Assembly: GCA_964057225.1 (NCBI GenBank)
Contig: OZ059894.1
Span: 13,268,001-13,332,000 of the forward strand
Direction: 5' to 3'
DNA from: Auanema rhodensis
Lineage: Eukaryota > Animalia > Nematoda
DNA: 64,000 nucleotides
In this document: positions 13,290 through 59,236 of the stretch, piece after piece
Numbering within the stretch: position 1 is the stretch's first letter
Layout: each line of letters starts with the position of its first letter
Notes under the pieces: model-generated
Databases searched by the model: none
Told to the model about the DNA's origin: nothing
Seen by the model: the letters and a program-made list of their open reading frames with translations, nothing else
Program-made: the position numbers and the translations under genes

Positions 13290-14367
13290 AACCTCATCAT
13301 TGAGGAACTTCGCTGCATCAAAAACCTCTTCCAGAAGAGGTCTTTACCTGATATCTGCACACAAGGGACTCAAACTCCCTCCAAGCCAAAGCTGAAGAAG
13401 ACAGAAGCCACACCACCAAACAAGCCCTCGACGAGCAAGGAATCTCTGCCTTCCTACGTCGACCTTTTCTGAACAATGCTATTATAGCATATTCGGCGGC
13501 GGGAGTGTGCGAACGCACTCCATCTTTCCCATACTCTTTTTTGGACAACGATGCACTTTTAATCCCACTATTCTATTCACCTATGACTCATACGTGCCGC
13601 ACACACACATGCAAGTTTATCCGATTACTCACCAGATGTTCCTTCCTTATTGTCTCTTAAACACATCTGTCCATCTTAATCTTTTATGTTTAATCTTGTT
13701 GTCTTATTGCCTATAGTCTATTTTAATCTTATAAATTTATTTAGCTCAATCAATAATCTTGTAAGTTGCAATCGTGGTCTAAATGGCTCATGACTCATTC
13801 GCCCACTCGCGCATCCTGCAAAATCTGGCAGATGCCGCACAGTATAAGACATGACTCATCTACACTTTGCCTGCCCCCACAACTTACAGCAGAAGGCACA
13901 TTCAATCTGTGGCAAATGCTGTATTCTCTCTATATTCTATTCTATTCTAATATTCAGCCTACGTATCTATTATTCCTAGATTATTTTATATTTCATTTAT
14001 TATATATTATTTCGTATTCTTGTTGTAAATTATTTCTCTATTTCTTCATGCCATCATTAATATGTATTGTATATCGCCCGGTAGATTTCGTATATAAGCT
14101 CGCAGCTTTTCCCCATTCTTCACCTCTTGATCCAACGACCGCTCCAAGCGTCGTTCTGCTGTTGCTGCTGCTCCATATTTACTTTGTACTCTTGCTTCGT
14201 ATTGTGTTCATCTATATTTCTATTTTTGTCACTGTTGTCTTTACCAGTTCTCTCTTAATAAATCGTTGTCCAAGTAACCTAGCGTTCTCGTTCTCTACAC
14301 TTCAAATCCACTGAACCACCCATGCCTGTTTTACGCTCTCCTACTTCAAAGGACTCCAGTCAAAACA
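13289..14367 (+). mobile_element. Bel/Pao family-1 3' end: last codons of ORF, PPT (GGCGGCGGGAG) and full LTR 13506-14367 (TGTGCG...AAACA)
   Basis: Matches the reverse complement of 47584-48660 with a few percent divergence. TATA (GTATATAAG ~14091) and AATAAA (~14257) present. Confidence 0.92.
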
Positions 14368-45948: not shown

Positions 45949-46286
45949 AGTAGAGAGCCGTGCAAAATTTACTAACCACGCCCCCAAACAGCTGTCAAAA
46001 ACATACTTTTGGGGGGCGTCAGCTGCTAAAAACATACTTTTGGGGCGCGTCAGCTGTCAAAAACATATTTTTGTTTCGACTGGAGTCCTTTGAAGCAGGA
46101 GAGCGTAAAACAGGCATGGGTGGTTCAGTGGATTTGAAGTGTAGAGAACGAGAACGCTAGGTTACTTGGACAACGATTTATTCAGAGAGAACTGGTAAAG
46201 ACAACAGTGACAAAAAATAGAAAAGTAGATGAACACAATACGAAGTAAGAATACAAAGTAATATGGAGCAGCAGCAACAGCAGAAC

Positions 46287-47629
46287 GACTTGCGTAGACA
46301 GTTGTGGCACCGTTTTTCTTGAGTCAGAATGGTCTGACGTTCTTTCTTTGTCTTCGGAGTGTCGCAGTCCCAGGGAGCGTGGGGTTTCTGACAGAAGATG
46401 CAGCTTGTTGTTTTTGCTGCTGTTTTTCTCATCTCAGGTCGTGGGCGCTGAGGTGTCGACACGTTGTTGGGCCTTGGGCCTGTGAAGCTGTTTGGACGTT
46501 GGATGGGTTTCTCAAATCGATCAGCAGCAAAGATTTTTACCTTGTTTTGTTGGCGAAGGTATCTTTGAAGTGTCGATACTAGTGTTCCAATACTGGGCCT
46601 TGTGTCGAGCGTTTTGTAGAGCTCTTGAATAATGCTGCCTGGTAGCTTGCTGTGCAGAAGTACAATAGCAAGAGCGTTTAGCGCTTCGTGTGAATTGGTT
46701 TCTGTTTGGCGAAAGATACCGGATATCTTGTCGGCCATGAACAGAAGGTCTCTGTTGCTCGTGGAGCGTGGTTGGATTTGTACGAAATCCAACATTAGGT
46801 GTTGGAGGATGTTGTCGTTGTCATCGTACAAATCATGGAGGAAGCAGACGGCAGCGTCATAGGAGTCTTCGTTCGTTGGGAACGAAGAGAGCTGAGCGGC
46901 TGCTTCACCGACAAGAGATTGACGTAGGTAGTTAAATTTCTCGATTGTCGGTATGTTAGCCGAGTGGATGAGTCGGTTGAACAAACTCCAGAAGTTGCGC
47001 CAGTTCTTCACATTTCCGTCAAACTTAGGGATGTCTACAGGTTTGACCGTGGGTCTCAGTCTGTAGGACTCCCTGTACGCTATTGGTAGCGGTTCGTTTC
47101 CCAACTGAGCTTGAGTCGGTTGGGTGAGGTCTGGCCTCTGAACTTCAGTTGTGAGCGGAATGTTGGCAATGGGCTGGGCAGACGGCGCAGAAGAAGTTTG
47201 TTCTTCTTCCGGGTCTTGAGCTCGCATTGCAGAGACTTGGTCTATTAGCGCGGAGGTATATCCACGTAGGGTGGATATGTGTCTCCGGAGAGTATCCTAG
47301 TTAGCGAGGATTCTCTCTTGATCTTCAGAGTTAAGATCTTCGGTAATATTGTTCAACTCCTCAATGAGGGAGTTGATCATGTTGATGTCAAGGTCAATAG
47401 CCAGCATCTCTTTTTCACGAAGTTCAATCATCCAGGTCATTTTGTTTGACTGGAGATTGATTTGACGAGTCATGAAAGATTTTCGTCGTCCGTCCTGTTT
47501 TTGAAGCTTAGTCAAAAACGAAGTACACCTAGCGATCCAAGCGTTGGCCCGAGAGGTATCGGAAGCCTCGGCCTCATGCACCATGTTTTGACTGGAGTCC
47601 TTTGAAGCAGGAGAGCGTAAAACAGGCAT
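46287..47629 (-). pseudogene. gag: Duplicate gag of the second tandem unit (premature TAG at 47297; truncated by fusion to LTR)
   Basis: Near-identical to 55640-56982; joins LTR sequence through GAC microhomology. Confidence 0.92.
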
Positions 47630-48475
47630 GGGTGGTTCAGTGGATTTGAAGTGTAGAGAACGAGAACGCTAGGTTACTTGGACAACGATTTATTCAGAGA
47701 GAACTGGTAAAGACAACAGTGACAAAAAATAGAAAAGTAGATGAACACAATACGAAGTAAGAATACAAAGTAATATGGAGCAGCAGCAACAGCAGAACGA
47801 CGCCTGGAGCGGTCGTTGGATCAAGAGGTCAAGAATGGGAAAAGCTGCGAGCTTATATACGAATTCTACCGGGCGATATACAATACATATTAATGATGGC
47901 ATGAAGAAATAAAGAAATAATTTACAACAAGAATACGAATTAATATATAATAAATGAAATATAAAATAATCTAGGAATAATAGAAACGTGGGCTGAATAT
48001 TAGAATAGAATAGAATATAGAGAGAATACAGCATTTTGCCACAGATTGAATGTGCCTTCTGCTGTAAGTTGTGGGGGCAGGCTAAGTGTAGATGAGTCAT
48101 GTCTTATCCTGTGCGGCATCTCCCAGATTTTGCAGGATGCGCGAGTGGGCGAATGAGTCATGAGCCATTTAGACCTCGATTGCAACTTACAAGATTATTG
48201 ATTAAGCTAAACGAATTCTTATGATTAAAATAGACTATAGGCAATAAGAGAACAAGATTAACATAAAAGGTTAAGATGGATAGATGTGTTTAAGAGACAA
48301 TAAGGAAGGAACATCTGGTGAGTAATCGGATAAACTTGCATGTGTGTGTGCGGCACGTATGAGTCATAGGTGAATAAAATAGTGGGAATAAAGTGCATCG
48401 TTGTCCAAAAAGAGTATGGGAAAGATGGAGTGCGTTCGCACACTCCCGCCGCCGAATATGCTATAATAGCATTGT

Positions 48476-51400
48476 TCAGAAAAGGTCGACGTAGGAAGGC
48501 AGAGATTCCTTGCTCGTCGATGGCTTGTTTGGTGGTGTGGCTTCTGTCTTCTTCAGCTTTGGCTTTGAGGGAGTTTGAGTCCCTTGTGTGCAGATATCAG
48601 GTAAAGACCTCTTCTGGAAGAGGTTTTTGATGCAGCGAAGTTCCTCAATGATGAGGTTCAATGGTGCTGTGAGTTGTTGGATGTCCTTGCGGAGATCCTT
48701 CATCTCATTTACCAGAAGCTTGAGTTCTGGTTGCGCTTCCACTACAATGATGTTGGATTTGCGTGGAGGCGATGTTTCACAGCTTCTCTTTCTTGATGGG
48801 GCCCTCAAAGGATCGTAGGGCATGTCCAATTTTACGTCGTCCAAGTGGTCCTTATGAATTCTTTCCACCAATTCGGTGAGTCGTTTCTCGTTGCCAAATA
48901 GTTGTAGATCAGTAAGCTCCTTTTCGAATACATTATAGGTCCTGGCTGTGTTGATAAAGTCCTTTATTTTGATGAAATAACAGAGAATATCAGTAGCGGC
49001 AAGTTGGATGTCTCTAGCAGGAGTATTCGTAATCGCTTCAAGTTGGAATAAAGTTTTCAGAGATAGATCCATGGATTGCAATAGGCCCTTGTAGTAATCA
49101 TTTCTTTTGTCTAAGGACAGACGTAAGTATGATGAGAAAGACTTATTATAAATAAAAAAACATTTAAACAATAAACAAATAAAGATAAAGATAAGTCCGC
49201 CAACTGAAGATTCAGTTGAATGGCAAGCTTATATAGCGAATGTTATCAGCATTTTCCACGAAAAGTTATAAGTTGTCAATGACAATTATAACTATCTCAG
49301 AAAATGCTGAGGCTGCAAAATATAACTGATAACATAATACACTAAAATAGTAATCATTTCTTTTGTCTAAGGACAGACGTAAGTATGATTGTTTTCTCTC
49401 GGCTGAGGAAGCAAGAGTATCGCGAATAGTGGTGGCGTGAGTTGACATGATTAGGAATAAGAGTATGATAGCGACGTGGGTCTTCCGTTGAGTGATGAGG
49501 AAGAGGAGGCGCTTGAGGAAACGAAGCGTAATGATGGGCAGGCGGAGCGTGGTTTTAATAATTCTGATAGCGAAGAAAAGTGTGTTGCTCGCGATGGCGA
49601 TGGAGTATGTCGTCATGATGTAATACGAAAGGGCCAATGCGGATAATATCAGTATGAGACAAAATAGAAGTTCTCGGTACCAGTTAAGGTAAATGTCGTA
49701 GAAATGAGTGATATCAGGCCATGGGAAAGATATAACTGACTCATGAATGGAGGAGTGATTGCCATCGACGTAGTGTTTGTTGAGATCTTCCATATTATTC
49801 ACGTAATATAATATTCCGGTGAGCAAAAATGACTTCGTTTGTTTTCCGCAAGTGTATGAACACTGTGTTCGAGGTGAAGCTGTTGTCATTGGAAGTCGAA
49901 TAGTGTTCATTGTTCCTTCCGGGCTGCAGTGTAGCATGAATGCTGTACCTTCGCAAGTTGTTGCCGCGAGAGTATTTGTTGATGAGGAACATATAATTTT
50001 AGCCTGTGCTCCGTTTTGACAGTTGTAACAGCCTGTTAACATGGAGTCTGTTATGTCGCAAAATTCCGAGCTGTAATTGAATGAGCTTTGGAATTTGCCA
50101 TCAATTGTGATGTGTAGTTCGGCCATAATGTTACGGTTGACAGTTATGTGAACTTTGCGATTTGAAGATTCGATGGAGTAGGCAGGTGTGATGAGTGGTA
50201 AGGCACTTTTCACATTTTCAAATGATGTATTCAAAGAGTAGTCTTTGCATCGACAATTCACGGTATCTTCGGCTGGTGAACAATCGCAATGTGGAGTAGC
50301 TTGGCATTCCATTTTTATTGCTTTCTCTCTAGATGAGCAAGATAGAGTTGCTGGTTGGTTCCAGACTGCTGTTTTCGTCAGATTTCGAATGAATTTGTAT
50401 TGCATTGCTGGTATGACGGGTGAAGTAATGCTGGTAAGTGCTATCTTGAATGGAGACAAAGAAGTTATCAAATCGCCGTGTAAGGTGATGTTTCTGGTGA
50501 TTATATTCGTTCCATTTTGATAGGTAAGTAGCATCTGAGTAGATTGTGACCATTCTGTGCAAGTGAAGACTTCGTAAATGGATTTGTCCGTGGGTTTCAT
50601 ATACGTTCTGTAGAAGAGGCAACCGGATGATGGATAGAAGCATCCGCAGCCAATGCCTCCACAAGATTCTGTGCAGAATGTTTGTCCTGGGTATTGGTTG
50701 GCCATAGTTAGTTCATTGATCTTGGTGTCTTCTCTGATCATGGCGCATTTTGTCTCTTGGCAGGATCCAGTTCGTGGGCAGCGTTTGCTGTCTTGGACTT
50801 GAGTGATGCTTTCTCTAGTGAAGTATAGTGAATTTACTTCGCAAGAATAAGTGCTTTTGATCCACTGGATGCGTAGGAAAGTGATTTTTTCCTCGTTGTT
50901 GGTAAATGAGAGGCATGCTTCCTGAGTGTATGGGCTGATGGTAAGTCGTTCTGATGTTCGGATTCGACATTCGTTTTGAGTGCATGACGATTCTTTTGTT
51001 GAAATCATGTTCAATTCTTGACATGCAGAGGTGTTTCCTATTTTTAACAGTATTATTGCAAGAAGAGGAATGACGGATTGCCTTCTTTTTGAGAAGAGTT
51101 TCTTCAATTTTCGTCCAATTGTCAGTGTGAGTGAGAAGATTATATAGCACCACAGACGAATTGGTTTGCCGATAACCCATGGTGTGTATAGTAATCCGTA
51201 GCATAAGGCTGTGATCATATATACTATGAGTGTCAGTAGCAAGATTGAAGTCCAAGGCCAGCACGATGGATTGAGCAGGGTTGCTGTACAAAATGTGCAG
51301 GTAACTGTAGAGCAGAAGTGGACTCCTGGGCATGTTAAGAACATGTGTTGAAGTCTGGAGTTGTGAAAAAATGTCCAACTGACTTGGTAGTCTGTCAATA

Positions 51401-51590
51401 TTTCTGCTGTGGGAAGAGTGACGTCTCCGTTGTTACTACTGTTGAAGCATGTGTTTTGGATGCACACTTGTTGGTTTGCCGTACTGATTCCTTGGATATG
51501 AACTCCGTGGGAGTTGCATGAAATTGTTGGGTTTGCTGAGGCCATTGGTCCGAAAATCGCAAATATTGTGAAGAAAGTGAGGAGTGTATT
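48476..51590 (-). pseudogene. env: Phlebovirus-like Gn/Gc class II envelope plus ~230-aa C-terminal extension, disrupted by a 214-bp insertion
   Basis: Signal peptides, Gn TM, Gc starting CQEL at 51023, KRCPRTGSC, fusion loop CTESCGGIGCGCFYPSSGCLFYR, GCYNCQNGA, TM. Confidence 0.9.
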
Positions 51591-54500
51591 GGTTGTATCT
51601 CCGTACCATACTCGTGGTAAGTTACGTAAGTTGGTTCTTCTTTCTTCATGAACAGGTTCTTCTGGTGTTGCGTTGTCCTTGAGTTTTTCTGGGATCTCGT
51701 TGTCTGAGATTTCCAATGGGTGTAGTAAGTTGACTGGTCTTTTTATTTCTCGACCTGTTTCCGAAATCAGCGTTGCTTCTCTGATGTTTCCTGAACTGTC
51801 GGGGTGAACTTGAGTTATTTTTCCTGTACTCCATTTGTGACGGGGAATAGGAAGCTCGTTGATTAGGACGATTTGACCAATGGATGGAGTTCCCGCTTTC
51901 TTAACTGAAATGTTGTGATGGTGTGTAGCGCGGATCTCTTTCAGGTATAGGTCTGTCCAGAGTTCCCAGAACTTGTTTGTGCGTTTCCTTGATGAGTGAA
52001 TGGCTCGTTCTGTATCAGCTTGAGTTTGTAGCGCTGGGCTGTCAATGTAATCCTCATCCATTTCTTCTTCTGATTCGACAGAGATGTTCAAGTCGATGTC
52101 TTTATAGATGAAATCGCATGGTCGTATGATCTCATCTTTGTTGGTATCTGTACCGATGTATGTGAGTGGACGTGTGTTTATTGTAGCTTCACACTCTGCA
52201 AGGGTTATTGTGAGCTCTTCAGTAGTTGGAGTACTGTGGAGTGTTTTGTAGAGAGCTTCCTTCACGGACCTAATAAGTCTTTCGTAAAAACCGCCTTGCC
52301 ATGGGGCATAGGGGGTGATGTTGTGCCAGCGAATTTTGTATTAATTTCCGCTGTCTGTTGTAGTGAAGAGTTTGTTTGCAACCTTTTGACCAAGCTCAAA
52401 GGTGCTTGCGTTGTCGCAGGTTATGCTTGAGGGACATCCACGTCGTGCCCAGATTTTTCGTAGACAGTTGAGAAATGCGGTAGTTGTGAGGTTGTGAATC
52501 ACCTCGAGATGGATGAGTCTTGTCACCGTGCAGGTGTAGATGCAGCTCCAGACTTTCGTATTTCCGTTCTTGACTGTGATGGGTCCGAAGTAGTCGAGAC
52601 CTACATGTTTGAAGGGTTGGCTTCGTTGGAGTCGTCTGGATGGTACGTTTTCCGATGGAGGGTACGTAAATGGCCGATTGTTGAGCTTTTGACAGTTTGC
52701 GCATTTCCTTATGACTGCTTGTGTCTGGGAACGTAGTTGAGGGATCCAGTATTTTTGTCGTACTTCCGCCATGGTATGAGCAGTACTTTTGTGAAATTTT
52801 TCATGGAAGTGCTCTATGAGGAGTCGTGCGGTTGGTGTTTTGGGAAGGATGATGATAGGAAGCTTAGCTGATTGCTCTAGCTCAGCGTTTTCCATTCGTC
52901 CTCTACTGTGCCAGAGGTGATCTCTGAGGAGTGGACGGAGATCGTTTCTTTGGGCTGCTGTCAGACGAACCATCAAGTTTCTTTGATGAAGGTGTAGTAG
53001 ATTTAGTTCTGCTTCTTCATAATGTTGAGGTGTACGAGCTTCAGTGAGTGGATAATGAGTTGCTATCCATTTTTCTTGTGCCTGTGTCCATGAGGAACAG
53101 TCTGATATCCATGGTTCTTCGTTTGGGTCGTCATCCGTAGTTGTCATGTGAACGTTCACTTCATTCTGTGGAAGAGTGAATAATGGACCATTGATTGCTC
53201 GTTCGAGTTGAGCTTGTGGATTCCACCAGTAATGGTCACTAAGCTCTGCTGTGGTACAACCTCTTGTGGCGATGTCGGCTGGATTATCCTTCGTGTTGAT
53301 ATAACCAAAGAAGGTCTTTATTTCCATATCTTCCAGTTGTTCTGCGCATTCGTTGATTTCTTTGATGCGGTTTTGTACCAAGACCCCCGTTGTTTTCTGG
53401 TCTGGTTTCTGTCGGATCCAAGCAAGTGCTATCTCAGAGTCGGATAGAAAGGTAGCAGTTTCTATCTTGATGTTGTCTCTGATTTCTTTGGCGATTTTCA
53501 GAGTGTTTGATACTCCTATTGTAAGAGCAGAGATTTCTGCTTTTGGGATTGTGATGGATGAACTCTTGGAGTGCAACTTTGATTTTGCAAACATGAGTCT
53601 GGGTTTGCGAGTTGATGCTGATAAGATGTAGACGCAGAATCCTAACGCTGATCCGCTGGAATCTGTGCAGGTGACCAGATGATATGAGTTTGTTGGGTCT
53701 GATGGTAGTGAGCGAGGAATCGCTTTTACCATGTGAAAATTGTCTGACAATTCTTTCCATTTTTGTTGTAGCTCATGGGGAAGTGTTGTGTCCCAGTCGA
53801 AGTTTTCTGTCCACAGTGATTGTAAAAACAGCCGGAGTGGATGAAGGCTGGGGCAGATCATTCCCATAGGATCGAAGATTGAGGCTATAGCTTGAGTTAT
53901 GCCTCTTTTGGTTGGTTTTGTTTCTGTTATCTTCGTCTCGATAATCCATTGATCAGTCTTGGTGTCCCAAGGTAGTCCCAATACTTTGGGTGTTGTTGAA
54001 CTGTTTTTCTCTTCCATACTGAGGTTGTTGTTGAAGGTAGCGTCGTTAGATATGAACTCTTGGAGTGTCATATTCATTTCTGCGAATATGTCTTTGATGT
54101 CTTGATACCAGAGACATATCTTTTCGCTCGAATCACATGCTAAGAGTAAGTTGTCGACGTAGAGGTTTTCCTTTATTTGATGGGCAAGAAAGTTTTCGTG
54201 ACTTCTTTGCATCAGATGATAGCGTATAGTTGCGCTGAGTAGGAATGGAGAAGCGTTGATGCCAAACGGAACTCGGCAAAAACGAAGTGTCCTTATGTTT
54301 TCTGGTGTGATTGGTTGATTGATGTCATTTAACCAGAAGAATCGTGTCGCGTCTCTTTCGGATTCGTGTAGTCGGATTTGAAGAAAGGCTTTTTTAACGT
54401 CAGCAATCATTGCTATTGGTCCGCATCTGAATCGTAGTATCATCCCTATGAGAGAAGGAAGGATTAATGGGCCTTGGTGAATGACGTCGTTCAAGCTTGG

Positions 54501-55520
54501 CTTGTTTTGGTAATGTCCGGAGGCATCGTAGACTATTCTAAGCTTAGTCGTTTCCTTTTGAGGCGTTATCACTGCCTGATGGGCGATGTAGTGAATCCTA
54601 TGAGCGTTTGGGTATGGATCCGTAGCCTCCTCAATGATGCCGCTGTTTAACTGTTCTTCAATAATGTTGTTGTATTGTTGAAGTAGTTGTGGTTGATTTG
54701 ATAGTTTAAGGGCTAAACTTGTCAATCTTTTGAGAGCAAGTGCTCTGTTGTCCGGAAGTAAGTGTGCGTTTTCTTTCCATGGGAACGAAAACATAATAGC
54801 CATCTTCTTTCTTTTGGATGGAAGCGTTGAATTGATCTAGGATCAATTTGTCTCTCGCTTCTCTCTCCTCTTGTTCTGTGCCGGTAAATTCCATGTGTTC
54901 TTCAATGAAACTTTTGTTCCATTTTTGAATTGGTATTGAAGATTCTCCTGTGATGACGGAGTAGGCACTAATTGACTTTTTGTCAGTTGTTTGACCGGTG
55001 ATGAAATTTCCAAATTGTGTGTGGATGATTATGTTGTCTGGATTTAATTGCTCTACGGAAGTCAGTGCTTGCCACATAAGGTCCGATCCTATGAGGAGTA
55101 GGAGTAATCTTGGAAGTTTGTCCAAGGCTTGGCTTGGCCTTTGTAGCTTTTTGGAAGCTGACTGTGTTGATAGGTCCTGTGAGGATCTTCTTCGTCCATA
55201 AGTTGGCAATGATTTCGGACTTGGTTCCGATGATTTTTGCTTCCACTTTATTGAGTTTCTCAATAGAGGTTGTGTTTCCGAAGGTTTTTATCTTCACTCG
55301 CTTCGTTTGGATTACGGTAAGCTGAAGCTCCTTAGCGAGGTCTTCTTCGATGAAGGATGTGTCTGATCCGCTATCAAGTATAGCGGGCACAGCAATGGTC
55401 TTATCCCCTTTGAAGATGTTGATTGTCCCTACCGGGAGTAGAGCGTTGTAAAACTGTTGGTCCTGTTGTTGAGTAGCGAACTGAATGATGTGTTCTTCCT
55501 CGTTGTAATCATCTCCATGG
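51590..55520 (-). pseudogene. pol: Bel/Pao pol: protease, RT, RNase H, integrase (several frameshifts, one in-frame stop)
   Basis: ILDSGSDTS; RIVYDAS, ADVKKAFLQI, RVPFG, YVDN; SIFDPMG, TDSS, NPADIATRG; GLDYFGP, CDNA, PWQGGFYER. Confidence 0.95.
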
Positions 55521-56982
55521 GAGTGCTGCTCAACATATTTACTTTGGAAGTCTTCTTTCTTCCGTAGCAGAGGACTTCCAAATGTTTTTCGCCACACTTG
55601 GAGCATGTGCGTTTGCTGGGGCAGTTCTCTGTGTTGTGAGACTTGCGTAGACAGTTGTGGCACCGTTTTTCTTGAGTCAGAATGGTCTGACGTTCTTTCT
55701 TTGTCTTCGGAGTGTCGCAGTCCCAGGGAGCGTGGGGTTTCTGACAGAAGATGCAGCTTGTTGTTTTTGCTGCTGTTTTTCTCATCTCAGGTCGTGGGCG
55801 CTGAGGTGTCGACACGTTGTTGGGCCTTGGGCCTGTGAAGCTGTTTGGACGTTGGATGGGTTTCTCAAATCGATCAGCAGCAAAGATTTTTACCTTGTTT
55901 TGTTGGCGAAGGTATCTTTGAAGTGTCGATACTAGTGTTCCAATGCTGGGCCTTGTGTCGAGCGTTTTGTAGAGCTCTTGAATAATGCTGCCTGGTAGCT
56001 TGCTGTGCAGAAGTACAATAGCAAGAGCGTTTAGCGCTTCGTGTGAATTGGTTTCTGTTTGGCGAAAGATACCGGATATCTTGTCGGCCATGAACAGAAG
56101 GTCTCTGTTGCTCGTGGAGCGTGGTTGGATTTGTACGAAATCCAACATTAGGTGTTGGAGGATGTTGTCGTTGTCATCGTACAAATCATGGAGGAAGCAG
56201 ACGGCAGCGTCATAGGAGTCTTCGTTCGTTGGGAACGAAGAGAGCTGAGCGGCTGCTTCACCGACAAGAGATTGACGTAGGTAGTTAAATTTCTCGATTG
56301 TCGGTATGTTAGCCGAGTGGATGAGTCGGTTGAACAAACTCCAGAAGTTGCGCCAGTTCTTCACATTTCCGTCAAACTTAGGGATGTCTACAGGTTTGAC
56401 CGTGGGTCTCAGTCTGTAGGACTCCCTGTACGCTATTGGTAGCGGTTCGTTTCCCAACTGAGCTTGAGTCGGTTGGGTGAGGTCTGGCCTCTGAACTTCA
56501 GTTGTGAGCGGAATGTTGGCAATGGGCTGGGCAGACGGCGCAGAAGAAGTTTGTTCTTCTTCCGGGTCTTGAGCTCGCATTGCAGAGACTTGGTCTCTTA
56601 GCGCGGAGGTATATCCACGTAGGGTGGATATGTGTCTCCGGAGAGTATCCTCGTTAGCGAGGATTCTCTCTTGATCTTCAGAGTTAAGATCTTCGGTAAT
56701 ATTGTTCAACTCCTCAATGAGGGAGTTGATCATGTTGATGTCAAGGTCAATAGCCAGCATCTCTTTTTCACGAAGTTCAATCATCCAGGTCATTTTGTTT
56801 GACTGGAGATTGATTTGACGAGTCATGAAAGATTTTCGTCGTCCGTCCTGTTTTTGAAGCTTAGTCAAAAACGAAGTACACCTAGCGATCCAAGCGTTGG
56901 CCCGAGAGGTATCGGAAGCCTCGGCCTCATGCACCATGTTTTGACTGGAGTCCTTTGAAGCAGGAGAGCGTAAAACAGGCAT
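55520..56982 (-). CDS. gag: Bel/Pao Gag with three zinc knuckles; ORF begins inside the LTR
   Basis: IPKFDGN...W..FW..F, EKFNYLRQSL; CIFCQKPHAPWDC, CHNCLRKSHNTENC, CSKCGEKHLEVLC. Confidence 0.93.
56922..56936 (-). promoter_or_regulatory. Primer-binding site for tRNA-Gly(GCC); also at 47569-47583
   Basis: TGGTGCATGAGGCCG directly after the LTR CA; complements the tRNA-Gly 3' end CGGCCCATGCA-CCA with one bulged base. Confidence 0.85.
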
Positions 56983-56996
56983 GGGTGGTTCAGTGG
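56979..56996 (-). promoter_or_regulatory. 18-nt site complementary to tRNA-Gly(GCC) nt 1-18 in U5, overlapping the gag ATG (also 14308-14325, 46114-46131, 47626-47643)
   Basis: Plus strand GCATGGGTGGTTCAGTGG equals the 5' end of a metazoan tRNA-Gly(GCC) isodecoder; invariant in all four LTR copies. Confidence 0.75.
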
Positions 56997-59236
56997 ATTT
57001 GAAGTGTAGAGAACGAGAACGCTAGGTTACTTGGACAACGATTTATTCAGAGAGAACTGGTAAAGACAACAGTGACAAAAAATAGAAAAGTAGATGAACA
57101 CAATACGAAGTAAGAATACAAAGTAATATGGAGCAGCAGCAACAGCAGAACGACGCCTGGAGCGGTCGTTGGATCAAGAGGTCAAGAATGGGAAAAGCTG
57201 CGAGCTTATATACGAATTCTACCGGGCGATATACAATACATATTAATGATGGCATGAAGAAATAAAGAAATAATTTACAACAAGAATACGAATTAATATA
57301 TAATAAATGAAATATAAAATAATCTAGGAATAATAGAAACGTGGGCTGAATATTAGAATAGAATAGAATATAGAGAGAATACAGCATTTTGCCACAGATT
57401 GAATGTGCCTTCTGCTGTAAGTTGTGGGGGCAGGCTAAGTGTAGATGAGTCATGTCTCATCCTGTGCGGCATCTCCCAGATTTTGCAGGATGCGCGAGTG
57501 GGCGAATGAGTCATGAGCCATTTAGACCTCGATTGCAACTTACAAGATTATTGATTAAGCTAAACGAATTCTTATGATTAAAATAGACTATAGGCAATAA
57601 GAGAACAAGATTAACATAAAAGGTTAAGATGGATAGATGTGTTTAAGAGACAATAAGGAAGGAACATCTGGTGAGTAATCGGATAAACTTGCATGTGTGT
57701 GTGCGGCACGTATGAGTCATAGGTGAATAAAATAGTGGGAATAAAGTGCATCGTTGTCCAAAAAGAGTATGGGAAAGATGGAGTGCGTTCGCACAATTTT
57801 TGAGCGTCAGCTGTTAAAATCATATTTTGGGATCATGGTTCATGGATTCTCCTTTTTTAAATTTAAAAATCATGATTTAAAGCATGATTTAAATTTTTTT
57901 TTTTAAATCAAATTTAAATATGCTTTTGTAAATGTATATATATAATTATATATTTTGAATTAATTTTTAAATATATTAAGTGAAAAAAAAATCTAAATTT
58001 TAAATATTTAAATTATATTTAAATTTTATATTTATAAATTATATTTAACCTTTATATATATAAATTATATTTAAATTTTAAATATATTAATTTGTTTTAA
58101 AATTTTATTACTTTATTCATTTATTATATTTATTAATTATGTTTGTTTACTTATTTTGTTTATTATGTTATAATATTGTGTTTTTTTACTGTTTTTATTT
58201 TTAAAGATCAATAAAATTTTTGCATGTAGATAATTTTGTTCACCGTACTTGTTATGGGTAATTCATTGGAACACATATCGAAAGTTAATTCGATAAGAAC
58301 GATATGAAATACCAAAATTTAATGAAACACATATCGAAGGTTAATTCGATAAGAACGATATGAAATACCAAAATTTAATGGAACACATATCGAAGGTTAA
58401 TTCGATAAGAATGACATTAAATTAATAATTTTTGAAATTACAAATTGTTATTAATTTTATTTATTCTAACAAGTAAAGGTTTCAAATTATAATAAAAGAT
58501 TAGTTTTAAACTTTATTTTACTAATATAACAATACAATAACTAAATAGAGCACACATTGAAGGTAAATACAATAATTTTAACAAACAGTTGCGCTGACCT
58601 CAACGCCACGCATATCGAGGGTTAATAAACACTAATAACTGCACTGTGGGGGTTTAAATATAGTATAAACATTTTAACATTTCAAAAGTTTTAGTTTCGT
58701 AATATAATCATTATTAAATATTCAAGAATGAAATATTTTTACATATAAAACGTTGGCAGTCATATGTTTTGTGCTACAATATGGGTGTAAAAGTATACTA
58801 TGAATAATATATGAGCTATTAAGCAAAGTTTAAAAAGCCTAAATGTTTTACAGAGATGGCTGTTGTTTATGGCACAAACGGTAAACAATAATGTTTAAAG
58901 AGATGTAAAAACTAATTAATATGCAGATTGTTTACAGGTTCAGAGTGCACCAACTGCTGGCAACTGTCGATGAGATGAGTATATCTGCATAAATATGCTG
59001 TAAAATCTAATTAATAAAAGAATTTCATCAGCAAACTTGATTGTAACACAATGGGTTGTACTTTACAAAAATCTTCGTATAAAAGGTTGGCAATTTTGCT
59101 ACATTTACATTTCAGCTCTGCCAACTATCCGAGGATCCGACGTTTCACCATCTCCTGCCACTCTTTGCCAATCGCCATAGACTGCTCCTCTCTGCAAGTT
59201 TGCCTTATATTTTAGAAAGTTGGATCTTTAGCGGAA

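Follow-up and report, generated by a model that had tools for sequence, protein, structure and literature searches.

A 64,000-nucleotide (nt) stretch of the Auanema rhodensis genome (GenBank assembly GCA_964057225.1, contig OZ059894.1, positions 13,268,001 to 13,332,000; hereafter the window, with coordinates counted from its first letter) contains an env-carrying Bel/Pao endogenous retrovirus on the minus strand. Within U5 of its 5' long terminal repeat (LTR), and overlapping the gag start codon, this element carries a segment complementary to the 5' part of the host tRNA-Gly(GCC). On the strength of sequence comparisons we consider it probable that this segment, here called the box, is the second part of a two-part (bipartite) primer-binding site (PBS), which would hold the host tRNA at two places and so offset a short PBS constrained by codons. 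A preliminary description of the locus had proposed such a second site for the primer tRNA-Gly in the leader; its observation was partly confirmed, and its interpretation is partly supported.

The 75 letters quoted in that description are present on the minus strand of positions 56922 to 56996. The 71-nt tRNA-Gly(GCC) is numbered linearly here; standard position 17 is absent, and the standard pair G5-C68 corresponds to linear positions 5 and 66. The box (56979 to 56996) matches the host tRNA at 17 of 18 positions, perfectly over nt 6 to 18 (56984 to 56996) and over nt 1 to 4; the one exception is a C.C clash at nt 5. The complementarity to tRNA nt 1 to 18 that had been claimed thus does reach the first tRNA nucleotides in the family of the window element (fam1), but it is interrupted at nt 5. 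AUG1 of gag (56980 to 56982), supported by the list of open reading frames (ORFs) and by a peptide kept across families, lies within the box and pairs with tRNA nt 2 to 4. A second in-frame AUG (AUG2, 56935 to 56937) straddles the LTR/PBS junction, being made of the final LTR base and the TG of the PBS; both start codons had been placed correctly. The 42-nt spacer between box and PBS (56937 to 56978) consists of the end of U5 and the codons for Gag residues 2 to 15.

The box starts 45 nt after an AATAAA (57042 to 57047), and U5 comprises roughly the last 90 nt of the LTR. This assignment to U5 uses an R/U5 border deduced from a sister copy, L076 (G000:C5:15167094-15167520), in which AATAAA is followed after 14 nt by poly(A). 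In that copy the entire U5, including the box and AUG1, is swapped for about 50 A's that run from there to the ...CAACA before the PBS, which looks like a premature first-strand jump onto a poly(A) tail and marks the poly(A) site.

Within the window, the 18-mer was counted four times (0.02 expected), always in an LTR copy, and the 15-mer PBS twice. The earlier observation that the 5' site is invariant in four LTR copies is accurate but uninformative, because fam1 copies are 91 to 100% identical throughout the leader region. Shuffling is more telling: 300 shuffled leaders gave no run of complementarity of at least 11 nt and 0.04 runs of at least 9 nt per leader, whereas the real leaders have runs of 13 to 15 nt at the same place in each family. 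Chance is therefore ruled out as the origin of the box.

Sister families were found by a search with the Gag N-terminus, and their 5' junctions were then compared. The clade comprises fam1, fam2, fam3, fam5 (a and b), and the single copy L082, with gag identities of about 45 to 54% and LTRs that cannot be aligned with that of fam1; a DNA search reached one sister family only from the box onward. All sister families read CCACTGAACCA, then three variable bases (CCC, ACT, CAA, or ACA, where a perfect tRNA match would be CCG), and then ATGCC. This conserved core, at 56986 to 56996 in the window element, pairs with tRNA nt 8 to 18 in the D arm and stands at positions -14 to -4 relative to AUG1 in every family of the clade, while the 60 nt of U5 upstream of the box are only about 50 to 60% identical between families after optimal alignment. 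The perfect run against the tRNA spans nt 6 to 18 in fam1, nt 8 to 22 in two sister families, and nt 7 to 21 in a fourth family, extending in different directions and always following the tRNA. The part of the tRNA whose complement is conserved is the D arm (nt 8 to 22), not both ends as first described. A segment beyond chance has thus been kept, alongside a PBS matching the 3' end of the host tRNA, in four sister families, in L082, and in two more distant lineages with D-arm boxes. The most degraded D-arm box (10 nt, with one base deleted) is that of L082 (G000:C1:6879359-6879759), reflecting either a relaxed need for the box or plain decay of an old copy. Two sister families also match the anticodon stem over 7 to 8 nt, 29 nt past the PBS, but this match does not exceed chance and falls inside codons.

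The PBS itself is short. The fam1 site (56922 to 56936) is perfect to the host tRNA-Gly(GCC) 3' end only over 8 nt (TGGTGCAT, 56929 to 56936), followed by a mismatch and a 1-nt bulge and then five more pairs, so the 15-nt PBS described earlier shrinks to 8 nt, and the remainder follows gag codons. In the sister families the PBS TGGTGCATC is perfect over 9 nt to the host GATGCACCA; past it come A and then GGCCG, AGCCG, or GACCG, spelling the codons CAG/CAA GCC/ACC. Beyond PBS nt 8 to 9 the sequence tracks codons (CAT CAG/CAA/GAG GCC/ACC GAG) and not the tRNA, with synonymous CAG/CAA variation after nt 9. PBS positions beyond 9 cannot follow the tRNA, because gag codons fix them. Both sites had been reported to fit the same G5-C68 acceptor stem. 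The sole source of the apparent C68 fit is a GAG codon in fam1 where the sister families have CAG, and these families have T, A, or A opposite tRNA nt 5 and C opposite nt 68; the apparent covariation is thus a coincidence confined to fam1. In the old copy L082, the Gly PBS is perfect over 13 nt and a 9-nt in-frame insertion comes after it, which is what uptake of tRNA-templated sequence would be expected to produce.

Coding also extends upstream. The stretch from AUG1 to AUG2 encodes MPV(L/I)RSP... in all families, varies from 36 to 45 nt in length, and always keeps the frame; the seven codons of MPV(L/I)RSP show at least 10 synonymous differences against 2 replacements. Since the spacer is coding, changes frequently at third positions, and keeps its frame, the gag start lies in U5, and by this comparison the spacer is a conserved Gag N-terminus.

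The host genome (181 Mb) contains about 600 tRNA-Gly(GCC) genes, and all those seen start GCATCGG and end CCGATGCA; the host tRNA is of the C5-G68 form. The GCATGGG..CCCATGC Gly isodecoder suggested for verification was not recovered by genome searches with the 5' pattern, the 3' pattern, or the PBS complement. The 5' pattern, directed at a G5 isodecoder, gave no exact match; the 3' pattern, directed at the C68 side, gave matches at chance level only, and no tRNA-like 3' end reads CYCATGCA. The 11 genomic matches to the PBS complement are all copies of the fam1 element, and the 24 exact genomic matches to the 18-mer box are all LTR copies, with none in tRNA genes. Because the sister PBS TGGTGCATC is perfect to the host GATGCACCA and the L082 PBS seems to have been recopied from the tRNA, sequence matching suggests that the real primer is the host tRNA-Gly(GCC).

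The genome holds huge tandem arrays of identical tRNA genes, including the approximately 600 for tRNA-Gly(GCC) and about 840 tRNA-Arg 3' ends, among some 28,000 tRNA candidates genome-wide by a rough count. Array sites (in G000) were noted at C6:9.61-9.73 Mb, C6:10.57 Mb, and C4:17.55-17.59 Mb; C3:17.68-17.72 Mb and C7:9.0-9.17 Mb; and C4:18.57-18.62 Mb. The primer tRNAs of the Bel/Pao families belong to this amplified set. Many Bel/Pao copies (L019 to L024, L089, L092, L094, and fam1 copies at C6:9.597-9.608 Mb) lie within a few hundred bases of Ile/Asp/Gly/Arg-like tRNA arrays, which could reflect an integration preference or co-accumulation.

The comparison was extended to Bel/Pao lineages of this genome that are less closely related (gag identities of 26 to 36%). 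Those with L092/L095 use a Gly primer with a PBS run of 10 nt and have a 16-nt D-arm box (nt 12 to 27) abutting AATAAA; L093/L094, with a probable Gly primer and a PBS run of 7 nt, have a 15-nt D-arm box (nt 10 to 24) just past the TATA box and hence in R. A different arrangement was found in L088/L089/L097 (Gly, PBS run of 12 nt), in which a 13-nt box for the anticodon arm (nt 30 to 42) lies 26 nt downstream of the PBS. L085, L086, and L090 (Gly, 12 nt) have no box, nor do L091 (Arg, 18 nt; one 9-nt match at chance level) and L096 (Arg, 11 nt). In every lineage whose PBS spans no more than 10 nt, a D-arm box of 13 nt or longer is present; lineages with a longer PBS are mostly without one. tRNA-Arg is the only non-Gly primer recovered, and no Arg family has a significant box. 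Two of the Bel/Pao lineages have the sequence TGGCGA(Y)(Y)NT(W)AGTCCA in common, about 100 nt past the PBS in L088/L089/L092.

A bipartite PBS would work as follows. In this clade, gag has been extended 5' through the PBS into U5, and an 8- to 9-nt PBS directly behind the LTR would pair with the tRNA 3' end. The box, 36 to 45 nt upstream, would pair with the D arm through 13 to 15 contiguous nt within tRNA nt 6 to 22, and, across the 3-nt variable gap and still in register, the AUGC of the gag start would pair with tRNA nt 1 to 4. Opening of the acceptor stem on the short PBS would free the 5' acceptor strand and the D arm, both of which the U5 box could capture, supplying the binding energy and specificity that are missing where coding forbids a long PBS. 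We infer that both contacts form together and aid primer selection and initiation, and that the bound tRNA would hide both gag AUGs. Rough nearest-neighbor estimates agree with this scheme: the box-tRNA duplex is predicted at -26 to -34 kcal/mol, the PBS alone nets about 0 (-3.5 to +6) kcal/mol after unfolding of tRNA and leader, and PBS and box together net -15 to -27 kcal/mol.

Several points weigh against a bipartite PBS. The energy figures assume an unmodified tRNA, with D-loop modifications ignored, and ignore the knot penalty. The box and PBS helices cross topologically, and standard cofolding of leader and tRNA, the check proposed in the preliminary description, accordingly displays each contact singly and not the two together. 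The sister families share ancestry, so that their boxes represent one origin with maintenance and not independent inventions, and the ATGC part of the box is equally explained by Met-Pro coding. The boxless L096, with its 11-nt Arg PBS, makes the link between short PBS and box a trend only. Outside the genome, only three distant Gag protein homologues were found, at 24 to 26% identity with the N-terminus uncovered, and a search of sequencing runs for the element gave matches in DNA runs only and none in RNA runs. Metagenome scans for the box layout gave no match to a strict pattern and 29 to a loose one, none with the layout of the element, consistent with chance.

The box spans -14 to +4 of AUG1, and the PBS holds AUG2. 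Occlusion of both start codons by a docked tRNA would lead logically to the translation-versus-priming switch that had been proposed: docking would hide both AUGs, and germline 5' tRNA-derived RNA (tDR) of tRNA-Gly-GCC would hide AUG1, toggling the RNA between translation and replication. We regard such a switch as a speculative extension and rather unlikely on present comparisons. If true, it would be a tRNA-operated decision between translation and template use and the first natural site for a 5' tRNA fragment (5'-tRF) on a retroelement.

Somewhat less likely still is the reading in which the box serves to bind abundant 5' tRNA-Gly(GCC) fragments or halves over the gag AUG, either for host repression or as a germline sensor on the side of the element; binding of such fragments and docking of the primer can both hold. 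The D-arm boxes all fall within tRNA nt 1 to 28, which are present in 5' halves, and in the clade the box overlaps AUG1 and is complementary to the 5' fragment (nt 1 to 4 and 6 to 18). 5' tDR-Gly-GCC accumulates in Caenorhabditis elegans sperm (PMC13136342). A pure host-defense target should be lost, however, and the box is invariant while U5 diverges, suggesting a benefit to the element. The presence of the box also tracks the short PBS, and a related lineage targets nt 30 to 42, across the anticodon-loop cleavage site, a stretch offered by the intact tRNA only.

The full model first put forward combined a G5-C68 isodecoder, double strand exchange at the base of a U5 hairpin, and a CAUGC/GCAUG switch; we judge it very unlikely. 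Both fam1 sites would fit a G5-C68 tRNA, and the predicted 75-nt fold does pair CAUGC with GCAUG and close the spacer hairpin, which is the predicted minimum-energy fold of the fam1 spacer. Neither structure withstands comparison, however. The fam1 hairpin has a z-score of -1.3 and is equaled by 25 of 200 shuffles, single-family hairpins range from -1.2 to -1.6, and the whole 75-nt fold, at -0.6, is no better than shuffles and is not conserved. The consensus fold of six families reaches -1.4 kcal/mol with no compensatory pairs, and a U-to-C variant in the hairpin stem within fam1 is uncompensated. A structural U5 hairpin and the self-pairing were rejected on these grounds, given the coding spacer, the lack of covariation, and the weak z-scores. 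With no G5-C68 tRNA gene found in the assembly and the sister families breaking the covariation, the isodecoder and hairpin parts of the model are largely refuted.

Two further explanations are highly improbable. The box could be functionless, either a tRNA-derived fossil (read-through cDNA or a Helenus-like segment) or an antisense A-box for RNA polymerase III (Pol III): tRNA-like LTR segments are known elsewhere (Helenus, PMC10886601), the complement of the box holds an A-box-like TGGTTCAGTGG, and elements often adjoin tRNA arrays, but the box runs antisense to the tRNA and lies upstream of the PBS, whereas read-through copying would have put it downstream, the similarity of the flanking U5 to the rest of the tRNA is at shuffle level, no B box is present, and across families the box stands out as conserved amid diverged sequence. 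A tRNA-fossil or Helenus-like origin was rejected on orientation, place, and the absence of further tRNA similarity. Equally improbable is that the core is kept for some other cis role before the start codon (initiation context, packaging, or dimerization) and matches the tRNA by coincidence; its fixed place before AUG1 throughout the clade would suit such a role, but chance is very unlikely to produce an exact match of 11 to 15 nt to the primer tRNA of the element itself, and the D-arm boxes of other lineages stand in different registers far from the gag AUG.

The element that carries the box has the features of a Bel/Pao LTR element: TG...CA LTR ends, a short target-site duplication, gag and pol domains, a PBS, and a purine tract. 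Its 5' LTR (56937 to 57795, minus strand, 859 bp, TGTG...ACA), delimited by LTR alignment and flanks, contains TATATAAG at 57205 to 57212. On the same strand follow a gag ORF of 517 amino acids with DUF1759 (55429 to 56982), which starts at the ATG inside the box, and a region from 49266 to 54803 with a pol ORF (52341 to 54803) and an ORF for the pol end and an env-like protein (49266 to 52265). The domains of this region are Peptidase_A17 (Pao peptidase), RVT_1 (reverse transcriptase), Integrase_H2C2, DUF5641, and a Phlebovirus_G2-like glycoprotein; rve was also matched with a score below the Pfam cutoff. In the ORF at 49266 to 52265, the DUF5641 pol end is joined with a class II fusion glycoprotein resembling Phlebovirus G2 (E value, 1e-83). 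The coding region of the window copy (49266 to 56982) is interrupted, giving no fewer than three ORFs (517, 820, and 999 amino acids).

The insertion is a tandem composite. From 57795 down to 46072 on the minus strand, a full LTR and an 8.5-kb interior are followed by a second full LTR, which has a PBS of its own, and then by some 1.3 kb of interior and a truncated LTR. The second LTR (47584 to 48442), shared as the middle LTR, has its own box at 47626 to 47643 and PBS at 47569 to 47583 and is directly preceded by a polypurine-tract-like GGCGGCGGGAG (48443 to 48453). The third LTR (46072 to 46289), truncated to its last 218 nt with a box at 46114 to 46131, ends the composite. The 5-bp AAAAT occurs at both outer flanks, before the LTR at 57795 and after the truncated third LTR, and this single pair at the outer ends suggests one integration followed by unequal recombination and internal deletion. 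An LTR of a separate copy lies on the plus strand (13506 to 14367), about 4 to 5% diverged, with a box at 14308 to 14325 and no PBS behind it. Elsewhere in the window, positions 1 to about 6000 are satellite DNA, with roughly 35 copies of 173- to 175-bp units of two alternating subtypes.

Extended primer-template contacts are well studied in few elements only: Ty1, Ty3, gypsy, HIV, and avian retroviruses. Retroviruses likewise have U5 sequence upstream of the PBS (the primer activation signal and A-rich loop of HIV-1, the avian U5-TpsiC contact) that pairs with a second primer region. These sites differ from the Bel/Pao box: they are 7 to 8 nt long, contact the T arm or the anticodon loop, and stand beside a complete 18-nt PBS in a leader that is not translated. 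The closest precedent is Ty1, whose PBS is situated within GAG; its primer packaging and initiation require template segments that complement the T and D arms (PMC4974528). The Bel/Pao element resembles Ty1 in having a short PBS (10 nt, for tRNAiMet, in Ty1) inside the gag ORF and additional sequence pairing with the primer D arm, but the Ty1 boxes are downstream of the PBS inside GAG and 6 to 7 nt each, whereas here a single long box (13 to 15 nt, plus 4) lies upstream in U5, over the gag AUG, for tRNA-Gly and in another superfamily. Ty3 and gypsy have second sites at the genome 3' end (PMC1635307; PMC4974528) and, like the Bel/Pao element, combine a PBS of 8 to 11 nt with another site that complements an internal stretch of the primer. 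Their 3' site, however, bridges the RNA ends and targets the T arm and anticodon stem, while the Bel/Pao box shares a leader with its PBS, at a distance of about 40 nt. The bipartite architecture as such, which the preliminary description did not recognize as known, is therefore not new, D-arm contacts being used by Ty1. Literature searches, of incomplete coverage, found no description of a bipartite U5 box in Bel/Pao.

As regards tRNA-derived small RNAs, 3' CCA fragments target the PBS of LTR elements according to Schorn et al. 2017, as cited in PMC13136342. They likewise can pair with a retroelement leader but use 3' fragments on the PBS; our literature searches found no 5'-fragment site on a retroelement leader. 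Helenus shares with the Bel/Pao element tRNA-related sequence inside an LTR (PMC10886601). It is, in contrast, a nonautonomous element with a whole sense-strand tRNA-like Pol III promoter, whereas the Bel/Pao segment is antisense, 13 to 18 nt only, and part of an autonomous element.

Programs that require 12 nt to recognize a PBS will miss elements such as these. The box over the gag AUG, together with abundant 5' tRNA-Gly fragments in the nematode germline, provides a concrete site at which control of a retroelement by tRNA fragments may be tested. Within a single superfamily and for a single primer tRNA, the A. rhodensis genome also allows a natural series to be compared: D-arm boxes in U5 or R accompany PBSs of 7 to 10 nt, an anticodon-arm box accompanies a PBS of 12 nt, and PBSs of 12 to 18 nt stand without a box. 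The series suggests that auxiliary contacts may be traded against PBS length and would arise when gag coding invades the PBS.

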